36,140 nucleotides of DNA from Bigelowiella natans CCMP2755 (taxonomy: Eukaryota; Protista; Cercozoa), in NCBI GenBank assembly GCA_000320545.1, contig ADNK01003352.1, forward strand, positions 1-36,140, in the 5' to 3' direction. This document shows positions 4,500 through 36,047 of this stretch, in pieces. Position numbers and translations under genes: made by a program. How positions within the stretch are numbered: the stretch's first letter is position 1; every line of letters begins with the position of its first letter. A model generated the notes under the pieces. That model ran no database searches. It saw nothing but the letters and a program-made list of their open reading frames with translations, and was not told the origin of the DNA.

Positions 4500-5270
4500 C
4501 ATCGCAAGCTAGGGCACAATTGGGCGCAGCATCGCCATCATTAGGGGCGAGATGTGCGAACCGAAAGATCCTCACTTGATAGGTTCATGTTTTCAAATGT
4601 TTGCACACAAAAAAGTCATGAGTAGCAAGATCTATCACCTGAACATGAAAGTTGTATTCAATGCATGTCAACAGCAGCACAGAGTAGTTGCATCGACATC
4701 AGCTGCAACAAAGAAAGTGCAAGGCATCTAGGCATGTGCACGTTGCTATCATTGCAGTTATGAATTAGTCATTGCATGCTGTAGTCACGACGGTAGATAT
4801 CAATATTGTGGATGTGCTTGCCTGTGCACGACGCATATGGACCATTGTTTGTTCAGATGCATGCTGCGCTGCATCGAACATCGAATGCATGCACGATCAA
4901 ACATCTGGTCAAAACCTGATCACATTCCCCACTGAGGCTCGACAATGTGCCACAATGGACATGAGCACTGAATGAGATCGGAAAGCAATTCATTGTTGTT
5001 GATGCTCGTCGTCCACCGCAGCGCATGATGATTGCATGCATAGCCCACACGACACGGTTGTTTCAGCTTCGATTCATGTAGCAATAATGTCGCACATCGC
5101 CATGTGCATGATGCACACGAATTAACGACAGTGAAGCATAGCATTTCGCAAGTTTACATGCGGCGCTTTAAGCCAGATGCGGTCATGATGACAAATATAT
5201 CACCAAGATGCCCATGGTAGGCCAAACATTCTGTTCGGGGAGTTACGATTCTTAGCTTGTTAGCATGATG
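4500..5270. mobile_element. CATG/TGCA-rich decayed island 1 (putative transposon relic)
   Basis: GC-richer and microsatellite-free, lying between two convergent genes. About 18 CATG in about 770 bp by hand count. Contains fragmentary Cys/His/Met-rich ORFs. No termini or domain were recognised, so the element call is inference. Confidence 0.45.
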
Positions 5271-5359
5271 AGACAGTAGGTTGTAACTTTGCGTATGTTG
5301 CATCCATACTAATAATTTTTTTTTAATTTATAGAATTTGAATGAATAAACGGATGAAAT

Positions 5360-5436
5360 ACACACACACACACACACACACACACACACACATATATATA
5401 TATATATATATATATATATATATATATATATATATA
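5360..5436. repeat. (CA)n(TA)n microsatellite
   Basis: Directly visible. Confidence 0.95.
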
Positions 5437-5578
5437 TGCAATAAAGATATTACTGTATATTTTACGATTACTCCTTGCTCATATTTTCCAATAAGTCTAT
5501 CTGTAAAAATGAGGAATTAATATAGTACCATAATTCATTCATATTACTACTTTATGTGAACAAATTTAATCACCTATT

Positions 5579-31600: not shown

Positions 31601-34600
31601 GAAGAAGGGGGAAAAGAAGAAGACGAGGAGGAGGAGGAGGAGGATGATGGTTTTTGAAATGAGTCAACTTTGCACACATGGTTCTGCTTGTTGTTGTTGA
31701 TGATGATGATGATGATGATGATGATGAAGGTGAGTAGGTGGGTAGGTAGGTATGTAGGTAGTGGTGGAGATAGAGTTTGTTATCCCTCTCAATGGCTCTG
31801 TCATTGTGTGTGCGCCGTTAGTTTGTCTATTATTTTCTAGGAGAACCTTGCTCTCCTTTTCCGAAAAAATAATGGATGATGATGATGATGATGATGATGA
31901 TGATGATTTACACACCACCAACCATTTATTTCCCTACTGCTGTCATGTTATAAGGAGTTATCGCTATCATTTCTACTACCTACTATTATTACACTACACC
32001 CCTCTCCTCCTCCATATTCATAATCGAAGGTCGGTCCCCTCCCATTAACTTGTTGCTGTCTTTGAAACTACCACTACAGGTTAAAATTGAGACGGATGGG
32101 ATGAGTTTGTCAATTGGGGTAAACATTAACTCGATTAAGTAATCGTCACTACACTGTTATTATGAGCTAGAAACAATCATCGTTATCATCATCGTCATCA
32201 TCATAAACTCGCCTAACTGAATAACTTTTATGCAATTCTCATCCATCAAAAGGTTGGTCCAAATAAGTTATTAGCTCGATTAGTTTCTTCAATCAACAAA
32301 CCTAACGTATGATGACGATGACGACGACGATGACAACAACAACAACAAAAGCTGTTCTTACTTACTTAGTGTTTATCTATGAGCTGCTACTGCCTCCTGA
32401 TCATCTCATAATCACCGAATACATTTACCACATTACTTAATCACTAATCAACGATACTAGTAGCAGGAGATGTAGTAGTAGTAGTAGTAGTAGTAGTAGT
32501 GATAGTATTAACGAATTATCAATCTAGCAGTTACTACTGACTTTAGGAGAAATTCGTAAATTTCCTATAAGTAGTATTAGCACTAGCAGAAGCAGTAGCT
32601 CATGTTTCAAACTCCTACTACTACTTATTATCTAGATTAATAGTATGATTGTCACGATCATTCAAATCTAAATAAATCAGGGGGTGACAGTTGTGCGGCC
32701 TGGTTTATCATACGTGAGAAATCTGTTGAAACACACAAAACTACTGACTGTACCAGGATTTATGGGGAAACTGGGGCGACAGGTGGTACTACTTGTCACG
32801 TCGCCCAATCTACATATATATATATATATATATATATATATATATATTCTTGATGTAGAACACACACAGATGCACATATAATATATAATATAATATATAT
32901 ATATATATATATTTGGTGTTTCCTTTCTTTCAGATACTGGATACATTAAATTTGAGCTATGATGCTACTGTTGATTCTTTGAGTTGTTCCAAAAATCATA
33001 AGACTCTAATGGTGTTGTAGTAGTAGTAATTATCTATCTATATGTATTACTTAATATTATCTATAGAGTAACCAAACATCAACAGCGACCAGTGGCATAA
33101 TTTAGTAGTTGTAGTAGTAGTAGTAGTAGTAGTAGTAGTAGTATCCATATGTATGGTATGGCATCTGATTCGATGCGCTGGTGTAGTAGTAGTAGTAGTA
33201 GTAGTAGTAGTAGTAAGTTGTAAGTTGTTTCTGAAACAAACACCCACTGAAAAACGTAGTGAAACAACACAGTTGTTTGTATGTGATGTGATGTATAACA
33301 TTTTATGTTGTCGTGATCATTGTCATCAATCGGCTACTCATCAATTCATTATCAATATGAGGAAGGATGATGTGTCTTTTCTGTGTTGAGGCTGCTGCTG
33401 CTGTGTAACTTCATCTTCACCCAAAATAGACGAGGATAAAACACATGCCATTATTTTGTATTAACAATGCATAACAAATAGGCCGCATTTGGGAAAGAGA
33501 AATCTAAATATATTCTTGAGAGAGCTAGGTATACATCAAAGGCCTTTCTTTAACATGCATAGATGATTGCGTATAAATACTGCATGAATTGACTACTACT
33601 ATTTGTTTCGTATTATTAGATACCTCCTACATACGTAAATGATGATAATGATGGAATAATTCATCGTACAAATACTACTGCATCAATTGACTACTAGTAG
33701 TAGTATACAACAACTACATATGTGTAGATGATGGAGCGTTAGCAACAACAATAATAGGGTCAAAATAAATCGCCTAATTCGTTTATTAAAGGAAGAAGTA
33801 GTATGATTATCACATTTGTTATTATTGCTTAAGTGGCGTATGATCAAACTGAGGTAATGACCTTTTAATCATCATCCATCATCCAAGGGGAATTGATCTG
33901 GGGAAGGTTATATCGAGAGGGCCGCCAAAAGTCATATAACACTACTACTATAAAACAACGACTATTACACTACTACTATAAAAAACGAACATATTCAGTT
34001 GCTACCAATATGTCGCGCACTATTTTTTTTTAAATCATAATTATAATATTGAAAGGTATAAACAACGAATATCACTACTACACTAAAGCTTATATTTACA
34101 CTTAATGGGATAGTTTTGCAGATTGACAACGACTTTCATTTCCCCTCCCTAGAGTGTGATTTCTGAGCGCTCCTTCCCGCCAACAACTGATATCACCAAA
34201 TTGAGAAGGTGGTGCAAATACTATGTATTCCTTACCACATTAAAAAAATATGAGAAGCATGATCCAATCAATTGTTTATTCCTTTCCACAATTAAAAAAA
34301 CAATGTGGTGATATCTAATGTATGCTATCTTCAAAATGTCGGACAACAACTAAATTTACTAGATACTCTTACTACTACTTTTACTGCTACTACTATTACT
34401 ACGAACAATTAGGATATGTTCACTTCTGTGCGACAATCTGTTGTCCAGGCTTGAGGAAGATATGCTTGAAAATCAACGACTACCTTCAAAATTTAACGTA
34501 AAATGGAGACTGGGGTACTACTACATAGTCTTCGTTTGTCTATAATTAGATAGCACAACTCACCCACTCGCACACTCGTATTCTGCTATCTGGTGCAACA

Positions 34601-35668
34601 ATAATACTATTTCATGATCAACGTAGTGATGATGGCATTTGTTTGCAATTGTTGCAGATATGGTGGTAATAATGCAGGCAATCATCCGGGGGCTACTGTA
34701 CTACTCTGTAGTACAGATAGCACTGGCTGCAGTTCTTTGATGTCACGTGGCACTAAAATGCCAGCTGTTGTGCATTCTCTACTTCTCTCTAGTTTTGAGG
34801 AGAACAATGCAAAAGTGGACATGAATAGCAGCAGTAGCATACAAAATCGTGCAACTACGTACCAGCAACGTAATGATATGTAGTAGTAGAATAATTATAG
34901 AATTGGATTGAACTAATTCTCCTGTTGCCTTCCTCATTGTTGTCGTAGTCATCATCGTTATCGCTGTAACTTTCGTATTCTGTTCGTCACTGAAGTTGAA
35001 AATTTTTATACAAAATCTGAACATAATTTTATTTCTAGAATTAATTTTTAAACTGTTATTTTGGTGTCGTATTTGACCCGTGTTTTAATCGAACAGGAAA
35101 GAGATTTACTCTTCTGTGCCAAGAATATTCTGTGAAAAATGTCCAGAAATTTCACAACATGCGATCGATAGCACAAAACTCCTTAGTAACTACTGCTTTG
35201 AAAATGTCTGAGAAACAACTACAGCTTCCTGGGTTGTCCTTTGAATTGCTTAATCTGCAGATTTCCTTTTGAAATGATCGTATGATCTATGAACAATTTG
35301 TTTTGAAATGTCATTTTTCCATTCGCAGTTACACCAGATTTGTAGTTGGTGCGGAGGAATTTCGGCCAGTCCAGAAGAACACAGTTCTTCACTATTTTGG
35401 TTGTGATCCGTCTTCACAAAGACCCTCCAGAGGAAAGAAGAGAAAAAAATCTGGAAAAAAAACCAGAGAACATTGGCCAGTGAAAGAAAGGAAACAGGTG
35501 AATTCACGAAATGCAGAGAACACTGAAATTAGATCACAAAACATTGACAAAGGGTGGCGAAGACCAACTCCTGTTCGCCAGCACAAAACATTAAGTGCAG
35601 TCGTTGATGCCAAAGAGGGGATGGAGTTGAACACAGAACTCATAGATGACTTTTTTGATCTCAATTGA
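28687..35668 (+). CDS. Y-family translesion DNA polymerase (Pol eta-like; IMS/UmuC domain), about 16 exons
   Basis: Exons 28687-28842 (IVFHIDVDSFYVEAERLRHPELKFKPVA), 29322-29505 (VRQFNSGGFVAVSYEARSKGI...EALRKCPGLVV), 29954-30036 (YYRFVSREI...IEK), 30163-30220 (SSYDDYYVEAT), 31143-31597, 32080-32118, 32253-32306 (VGPNKLLARLVSSINKPN), 32681-32782, 32934-33011, 33482-33528, 33888-33930 (RGID...GPPK), 34153-34208 (SVISERSF), 34413-34514, 34658-?, about 35093-35232, 35329-35668 (TGA). Junctions between 34658 and 35232 are unresolved. Confidence 0.9.
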
Positions 35669-35669
35669 A

Positions 35670-36047
35670 AGATTCAAATGCTTTGCAAACTGTCATTCGA
35701 GCACATTGTGGAGATTCCATGCACGTGGAGTTGTGTCCGTGGCAAATGGACACGGCAATGTGACATGCGGCCACATGGCATGCATGTTGCACACATGATC
35801 GGCACTTGCGTTGACGTGCCACTTTTGGCTTGCAATCAAAATACATGCATCTTGTCCAGAGAAGTTGTGTGTCATTGTGCACATGAGCGATCGGTCAACT
35901 AAAACAAAAGCGTTAGGCATCATCCATGTGTCACCAATGAACGAAATTGCACATGCGGAGCTTTCGCTGTTTCGACAAAAATTGGTCCAAATGACAAAGA
36001 AAAATGGTTCCGTCAACGTGGCAATGTGCGTGCGTAACAATCATTGC
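35670..36047. mobile_element. CATG-rich decayed island 3 (subtelomeric; putative element relic)
   Basis: About 10 CATG in about 350 bp, microsatellite-free, with the same composition as islands 1 and 2. Runs directly into the telomere. Confidence 0.4.

Follow-up and report, generated by a model that had tools for sequence, protein, structure and literature searches.

Bigelowiella natans harbours the closest described counterpart of the sequence islands considered here, which lie in a contig of strain CCMP2755 (ADNK01003352.1); the window that was analysed is this whole contig of 36,140 bp. In mutation-accumulation lines of B. natans, 231 de novo mutations were recorded within two viral inserts, almost all of them changes of TpA to TpG or CpA (Mettrop et al., bioRxiv 10.64898/2026.01.13.699255). 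The two inserts, which are silent, mutate about 1000 times faster than the remaining genome, and the process was proposed to be DNA adenine deamination, with RNA guidance suggested (bioRxiv 10.64898/2026.01.13.699255). Its listed targets comprise an inserted giant virus (186 kb), an inserted virophage (25 kb), coding sequences poor in TpA, and 124 clusters at least 3 kb long (bioRxiv 10.64898/2026.01.13.699255). Three short islands of the window, at 4500-5270, 23385-24560 and 35670-36047 (coordinates as in the initial annotation; 2325 bp in total), have lost TpA in a closely similar manner while becoming saturated with CATG and TGCA, and they probably record the same kind of hypermutation.

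The likeness to the viral inserts comprises the loss of TA, the gain of CA and TG, the gain in guanine-plus-cytosine (GC) content with CpG kept, the slow change of TAG and CTA, and the equal effect on both strands. However, the islands are only 0.4-1.2 kb long, non-coding and single-copy, contain no recognisable foreign genes and stand behind host gene ends. Fungal repeat-induced point mutation (RIP) also makes regional, dinucleotide-specific transitions that leave compositional islands, and is thought of as a genome defence. Yet RIP converts CpA to TpA, lowers GC content, raises TpA and needs duplicated DNA, whereas the islands lose TpA and are single-copy. CpG decay at 5-methylcytosine in vertebrates and plants shares with the islands the enrichment of TpG and CpA, but it presupposes a deficit of CpG and brings GC content down, neither of which is seen here. 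A further parallel is offered by cut-and-paste transposons. Excision of a Tc1/mariner element leaves a footprint in which the duplicated TA target surrounds a few bases from the element ends. The islands carry comparable scars, in which the constant bases CTAG stand between two copies of a short target, although this target is 4 bp long and variable, with a preference for CATG, and no parent element is known. Relative to the preprint, the novelty lies in islands that are short, non-coding and single-copy and stand downstream of host genes, in their saturation with CATG and TGCA, and in the CTAG scars that they carry; the chemistry is already published. The preprint text mentions neither CATG nor CTAG scars nor gene-tail spacers, and its sole use of 'convergent' refers to convergent evolution (bioRxiv 10.64898/2026.01.13.699255).

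The islands had been described as CATG-rich, GC-richer and nearly free of microsatellites, and counting bears this out. CATG and TGCA each occur 53 times within them (22.9 per kb, or one CATG per 44 bp), against 90 and 129 occurrences (2.7 and 3.8 per kb) in the 33.8 kb outside. At the outside rate 6.2 CATG would be expected, and the Poisson probability of at least 53 is 4.9e-31. With the window divided into 500-bp bins, counts of 9-14 CATG are confined to 4501-5500, 23501-24500 and 35501-36000, all other bins holding 0-6 and mostly 0-3. GC content is 0.486 inside and 0.369 outside, and none of the 97 rows that Tandem Repeats Finder returned for the window falls within any island. Each island matches only itself in the 91.4-Mb assembly, so that the islands are single-copy, and the idea that they are members of a repeat family was discarded. 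The same holds for the idea that they are RNA genes, as they have no Rfam match.

The three islands, none of which is assigned a strand, differ in detail. Island 1 (771 bp, GC 0.46) holds 18 CATG and 17 TGCA, with observed/expected (o/e) ratios of 1.76 for CA/TG, 0.86 for CG and 1.60 for GC; its TA ratio is 0.52 overall and 0.25 at 4801-5100. Island 2 (1176 bp, GC 0.51) has 25 CATG, 28 TGCA and 17 CTAG, a CA/TG ratio of 1.81 and a TA ratio of 0.61, falling to 0.11 at 23901-24200. Island 3 (378 bp) has 10 CATG, 8 TGCA and no CTAG, with ratios of 0.15 for TA and 1.92 for CA/TG; as it contains 46 TG and 44 CA, there is no strand bias in it. It adjoins the telomere repeats (TTAGGG)n that end the contig at 36048-36140 on the plus strand (Tandem Repeats Finder, period 6, 15.7 copies).

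CATG is no special word, and its enrichment is a dinucleotide-level effect. All four of its rotations are raised in the islands (CATG 53, TGCA 53, ATGC 44, GCAT 40), and under a second-order Markov model the o/e of 4-mers is about 1.0, the abundant ones being predicted to within a few percent. Dinucleotide-preserving shuffles give 37.8 CATG where 53 are observed, an excess of about 3 standard deviations when summed (18, 25 and 10 in islands 1 to 3, against 13.2, 18.1 and 6.5), and 46.3 TGCA where 53 are observed, which is not significant. The dinucleotide ratios in the islands are 1.80 for CA/TG, 1.58 for GC, 1.30 for AT, 0.50 for TA, 0.79 for CG, 0.51 for GG and 0.64 for CC (GG/CC together 0.57). 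Outside, all are near 1 (TA 0.95, CA/TG 1.19) except CG at 0.68. In 300-bp windows the TA ratio drops to 0.09-0.25 in the island cores, with CA/TG at about 2.0.

Such values lie in the range published for hypermutated DNA. The 5% cut-offs for 1-kb windows are a Rho_TpA of at most 0.43 together with a Rho_CpA+TpG of at least 1.52 (bioRxiv 10.64898/2026.01.13.699255). In 300-bp windows both are passed by the island cores, namely at 4701-5200 (TpA 0.25-0.43, CpA+TpG 1.77-1.93), 23701-24300 (0.11-0.42 and 1.72-2.04) and 35501-36000 (0.09-0.14 and 1.87-1.99). The whole-island TA ratios of islands 1 and 2 are higher than those of their cores because CTAG scars re-add TA. GC content is gained without an extra loss of CpG relative to neighbouring DNA (CpG 0.79 vs 0.68), a further mark of the published process. 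Its context preference is also found again. When 211 scaffold-10 mutations from Table S2 of the preprint (bioRxiv 10.64898/2026.01.13.699255) are tallied by 3' base, TAT and TAA account for 67 each, TAC for 52 and TAG for 20, which makes TAG/CTA the slowest context. Correspondingly, 52 of the 76 TAs left over in the islands stand in NTAG or CTAN, against 35% outside, and CTAG, the rarest TA context outside the islands, is the commonest inside (n = 19).

A simulation in which each TA of the window's non-island DNA was randomly set to CA or TG gave a GC content of 0.46, a CA/TG ratio of 1.87 and 11-12 CATG and 12 TGCA per kb. Applied to the AT-rich quarter of the window, the same rule gave 18.9 CATG and 17.5 TGCA per kb, against about 22.9 observed. 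On its own, a TA-editing rule thus produces between one half and four fifths of the CATG/TGCA density seen in the islands. Taken together, the conversion of TpA to CpA and TpG in the islands is probably the footprint of the TpA-specific A/T to G/C hypermutation of B. natans, and not of cytosine methylation. We infer that the same enzyme system, for which an ADAT2-like deaminase (Bn78255) has been proposed, is responsible in the islands and in the viral inserts; silent chromatin or an RNA guide may define the target domain.

The CTAG scars provide a means of dating the editing relative to another event. Of the 19 island CTAGs, 6 have identical 4-mers on both sides, where about 0.07 would be expected by chance, and in an 80-kb sample 47-54 of 273 CTAGs carry a flanking 4-bp duplication, against 0.9% for other cores. 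The 12-mer CATGCTAGCATG (CATG-CTAG-CATG) occurs 3828 times genome-wide, against 7 for a reversed control; genome-wide statements here and below are pattern counts over the assembly. Within one mismatch of it there are 6679 occurrences, of which 2851 are one-mismatch relatives. A newly formed scar has two identical copies around a CTAG core, so later changes can be counted, and the scar serves as an internal clock. The variants produced by a TpA transition in the core, CTGG and CCAG, number 508 and 505 (1013 together), whereas the four transversion variants at the same two core bases total 224. In the flanking copies, A/T to G/C changes at CpA/TpG number 169 for two sites, the TpA transitions being sixfold that. 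Of the one-mismatch relatives, 36% belong to the pair of TpA transitions, against 5.6% under a uniform spread. The same preference is visible in the 80-kb sample, where CTGG or CCAG is enclosed by a perfect 4-bp duplication 10 times against 3.0 expected, and the other one-letter variants of CTAG are at expectation (24 vs 24). This TpA excess, found although CTAG is the slowest context, indicates that the mutator acted in the islands after the scars had arrived.

CATG is the favoured target of the scars (8 of 54 scars, against 2.3% of island 4-mers), and each CATG-targeted scar adds one CATG, yet in the window only 3-4 of the 53 CATGs stem from such duplication. Genome-wide, (TGCA)3 occurs 782 times against 134 for its control. 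Scars of several kinds, all without a strand, can be read in the islands. Island 1 contains GCAT-CTAG-GCAT with its 4-bp flank duplication at 4724-4735. Island 2 contains CATG-CTAG-CATG at 23660-23671, where the duplication adds one CATG, two overlapping CATG-CTAG-CATG scars at 24318-24337, and AAAG-CTAG-AAAG at 24144-24155. At 24378-24393, CTGG-CTAG-CTGG overlaps CTAG-CTGG-CTAG, and the copies of CTGG resemble CTAG cores altered from TpA to TpG; AACA-CTGG-AACA at 23895-23906 in island 2 is a probable edited scar. Tc1-like TA-CATG-TA footprints were rejected as a source of CATG, as the flanks of CATG are TG/CA chains without a fixed frame.

No scar of the CTAG type is present among the 21 new indels of the published lines (bioRxiv 10.64898/2026.01.13.699255). 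Table S2 contains roughly 14 new insertions (bioRxiv 10.64898/2026.01.13.699255), about half of which end in ACA (GACA, CAACA, ACA, ACACA, ..TAACA, ..CAACA, ..TTACA). They constitute a stereotyped small-insertion signature that the preprint text as read does not discuss, and none of the insertions is a CTAG scar.

The initial annotation had placed the islands at three of three gene 3'-end junctions and at no divergent one. Positions were judged here from reading frames, motifs and Pfam matches, and the gene ends are partly verified. The orientation of three genes is supported by Pfam. The ArfGAP gene, whose 3' part at 5685-8513 on the minus strand turns its tail toward island 1, shows ArfGap at 7311-7433 (minus, E 5.7e-12), PH at 8292-8513 (minus, E 6.8e-9) and, weakly, Ank_2 at 5685-5813 (minus). 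To the right of island 2, a coaD-like gene has a weak match to the CTP_transf_like N-terminus at 27303-27539 on the minus strand, below the curated cut-off. The Y-family DNA polymerase gene runs on the plus strand from 28639 to 35668; positions 1-27 of the IMS profile, an N-terminal match, fall at 28639-28863 (plus), and the final open reading frame (ORF) at 35273-35665 ends with a stop at 35666-35668, two bases short of island 3. In the two divergent zones the signature is missing, with 0-3.3 CATG per kb and TA ratios of 0.68-0.86. The claim is supported for these genes and zones, and less firmly for the other two neighbours. To the left of island 1, exons at 978-1908 contain motifs like those of M14 carboxypeptidases, GVDLNRNW at about 1050 and DVHSG..YTPY at about 1830, read by eye; Pfam gives no match for these short exon pieces, and the gene is taken to lie on the plus strand because the two M14-type motifs stand in the right order. 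To the left of island 2, a plus-strand ORF with a membrane-like tail has its stop at 23254-23256, but its MFS label is unconfirmed, as no MFS family match was obtained with Pfam.

The window was complemented by 15 further loci picked with a (TGCA)3 seed, a small and seed-biased sample, not a random one, and their islands share the composition signature of those in the window. Across window and seed-picked loci, the long ORF beside an island has its 3' end toward it in all 13 cases: 3 Pfam-matched genes of the window and 10 ORFs at other loci, 4 with a Pfam match (AAA ATPase, RING finger, URO-D C-terminus, ZZ finger) and 6 without. Among the 7 Pfam-matched ORFs one, the CTP_transf_like gene of the window, is below the curated cut-off. 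Downstream of 12 putative stops CATG and TGCA together reach 3-5.5 per 100 nt, against 0.4-0.9 in coding DNA, and an AT-rich gap of 100-400 nt, sometimes with a (TA)n array, often lies between stop and island. For orienting the unverified genes, a 5-mer strand classifier failed leave-one-out on the ArfGAP gene and was not used, splice-donor words proved too sparse, and a literature search on poly(A) signals of B. natans found nothing usable.

The edges of the islands are abrupt. An unedited compound (AC)n(AT)n microsatellite lies to the left of island 1 at 3982-4112, and 90 bp to its right, at 5360-5437, lies a 100% pure (AC)16(AT)23 compound microsatellite (both from Tandem Repeats Finder, without a strand). 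The (AT)23 part is an ideal substrate and is nevertheless intact about 120 bp outside the island, so the edited domain ends sharply. Such an edge agrees better with a target segment or chromatin domain of defined extent than with a diffuse regional bias. The islands are thus stretches of mutational decay, sharply bounded and placed behind gene 3' ends. As a separate observation, the two microsatellites bracketing island 1 share their orientation, and similar (TA)n/(CA)n arrays lie between stop and island at three of the other loci (L016, L020 and L015).

In the initial annotation, CATG and TGCA had been traced to 5-methylcytosine: in islands that are or were methylated, CpG deamination would have turned CGCG, CACG and CGTG into CATG and TGCA. 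The TpG/CpA excess of 1.8 that this account calls for is present, and the genome encodes cytosine-5 methyltransferase domains (DNA_methylase, PF00145, at C1391, C891 and C299), the one at C1391 within an intact 649-aa open frame. The matching CpG deficit is absent, however, CpG o/e being higher inside the islands than outside, and CACG, CGTG, ACGT and GCGC are enriched 3-6 times. CpG deamination lowers GC content, but in the islands GC content is up by 12 points and the deficit is one of TpA. Since TpA is missing and CpG is not, the precursors of CATG and TGCA are TATA, TATG, CATA, TACA and TGTA, not CGCG. CpG decay would also leave unexplained the loss of TA and the 1013 CTGG and CCAG scar variants, whose CTAG core has no CpG. 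As the origin of the islands, cytosine methylation is therefore scarcely credible, while methylated or silenced chromatin may be the signal that defines the domain. A literature search on a DNA methyltransferase or methylome of B. natans found nothing usable. A different account would see in the clusters of CATG, GCATGC and TGCATG the selected binding sites of a factor that terminates transcription or keeps converging genes insulated from one another. CATG does stand about 1.4 times above the dinucleotide-preserving shuffles, and a location behind gene ends, with the density of the words climbing downstream of stop codons, is consistent with such a role. Yet the enrichment of CATG is matched by that of TGCA, ATGC and GCAT, a trinucleotide model fits the 4-mers, strand bias is absent even in island 3, which lies downstream of a single gene, and three or four of the surplus CATGs come from scar duplication. 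The sequence that islands of the window and of the other loci have in common is limited to simple repeats and scars, and no Rfam match was found. Selected binding sites are thus a very unlikely explanation.

Several results weigh against TpA editing in place as the whole explanation. The GpC excess of 1.58 compares with 1.0-1.06 in the simulations, which likewise fail to reproduce the ApT excess of 1.30, and GCAT/ATGC reach 17-19 per kb where 6-9 are simulated. CATG and TGCA together outnumber CACA and TGTG by 106 to 62 in the window, which is not simulated either, and in other islands this ratio lies between 0.7 and 2.6. Mutation contexts relative to their availability in locus L021 are 1.5 for TAT, 1.0 for TAA, 0.65 for TAC and 0.38 for TAG; a preference for TAT over TAC should favour CACA/TGTG and not CATG/TGCA, so that a 3'-neighbour preference for TAC over TAT, the opposite of what is measured, was rejected as the cause of the CATG/TGCA surplus. 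Also rejected was an equilibrium of GC-to-AT pressure and instant TA editing (with or without CpA-to-CpG editing and faster CpG decay), which does reproduce GC 0.45, CA/TG 1.7, CG 0.8 and GG/CC 0.7 but fails on GpC and ApT. Outside the two viral regions, TpA transitions make up only 10 of 71 mutations, and 8 of the 10 lie in or near virus-like ORFs (bioRxiv 10.64898/2026.01.13.699255). It follows that the gene-tail islands probably did not mutate as fast as the viral DNA in those lines, and that they are old footprints, or are edited episodically, or are exhausted of editable TA. Further, Pfam gives no match for the nine island ORFs, and no foreign or transposon coding remnant was found in the three islands, although a foreign origin could be masked by heavy decay; transitions outnumber transversions at the scar TpA by about 9 per type, a ratio that taken alone does not exceed the genome baseline; and the additional loci are few and seed-picked. 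A third alternative is that the composition is inherited or generic, coming from foreign or transposon DNA of another composition that settled behind genes, or from the decay of old alternating purine-pyrimidine microsatellites, (TA)n and (CA)n, under a general AT-to-GC bias such as biased gene conversion. Alternating purine-pyrimidine runs of at least 6 cover 27.7% of island bases, against 11% in shuffles, and because transitions leave such runs intact, they may already have abounded in the ancestral DNA. The GpC and ApT excesses that editing does not generate, and the (AC)n(AT)n arrays that flank island 1, speak for this account as well. However, a general AT-to-GC bias would neither single out TpA, nor spare CTAG, nor favour the scar TpA sixfold over CpA. 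The islands are single-copy and have no protein-family remnant, and with a pure (AT)23 surviving close by, the bias would have to be confined to a sharply bounded domain. An inherited or generic composition is accordingly improbable, although less so than the two preceding accounts.

If TpA hypermutation shaped the islands, the starting DNA would have been AT-rich, non-coding, single-copy spacer behind gene 3' ends, in which nearly every TpA was converted to CpA or TpG. TATA, TATG, CATA, TACA and TGTA would then have ended as CATG and TGCA, and the outcome would be a GC-richer, CA/TG-saturated sequence poor in stops and microsatellites. A second, small contribution comes from the 8-bp scar (CTAG plus target duplication), which prefers CATG and copies it, and which is later edited at its own TpA. 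Converging transcripts are a possible source of guide RNA, and double-stranded RNA formed where transcripts overlap, or heterochromatin, could perhaps define the silent gene-tail domain. More speculatively, the TpA mutator may not be antiviral only but wired to transcription-end zones. Gene tails, above all convergent ones, would form bounded silent domains that serve both as landing pad for a CATG-seeking cut-and-paste element and as substrate for adenine editing, and this machinery would have left the GpC/ApT excess as its second signature. We regard this wider proposal as tentative and rather doubtful. GpC of 1.5-1.8, the ApT excess and a GG/CC deficit of about 0.5 recur across the island loci, and GpC is weak (1.13) in the viral locus. 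If the pattern is true genome-wide, 'antiviral hypermutation' has a much broader, positionally defined target, which would offer a handle on how the cell picks its editing targets, be it by transcription status, small RNAs or chromatin. The methylation account is replaced by a testable adenine-editing account. For annotation there is a practical warning, in that 'ORFs' rich in CATG/TGCA and poor in stops that follow genes of B. natans would be mutational artefacts.

Some observations were made on related loci of the assembly. A single capsid gene of nucleocytoplasmic large DNA viruses (NCLDV) is present, and its locus has a TA o/e of 0.50. On the contig of this sole capsid gene, at a distance of 62 kb from it, an open frame of 213 aa contains a full-length match to the histone fold (the two loci are G000:C3187:187108-187491, minus strand, and C3187:124672-125196, plus strand); the histone may be virus-borne, inside or beside the giant-virus insert. 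At L013:1401-3012 (G000:C236, ~10033-11644), 1.6 kb with a TA o/e of 0.02 has long open frames in several frames and adjoins a (TGCA)n run; this stretch probably represents a decayed gene covered by a block of saturated hypermutation. The cytosine-5 DNA methyltransferase domain at G000:C1391:110667-111599 (plus strand) is complete (262 bits) and lies in one uninterrupted frame, which is unusual for an intron-rich genome, and it may be bacterial or viral in origin.

Simple repeats of two further kinds were noticed. A poly-C plus (TC)n tract, read from the sequence on the plus strand at 24196-24222, occupies the middle of island 2, and the motif recurs at 9099-9137 of the window and at L004:85-116, L007:20-41, L011:129-149 and L015:2754-2776; it could be a mobile-element stub or a recurrent simple repeat. 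Finally, genic DNA of the window contains seven unrelated tandem duplications with a period of 41-45 bp, mostly of 2 copies and one with 6, at 2917-3006, 17484-17567, 18074-18159, 19964-20053, 20753-21015, 26910-27001 and 31477-31557.

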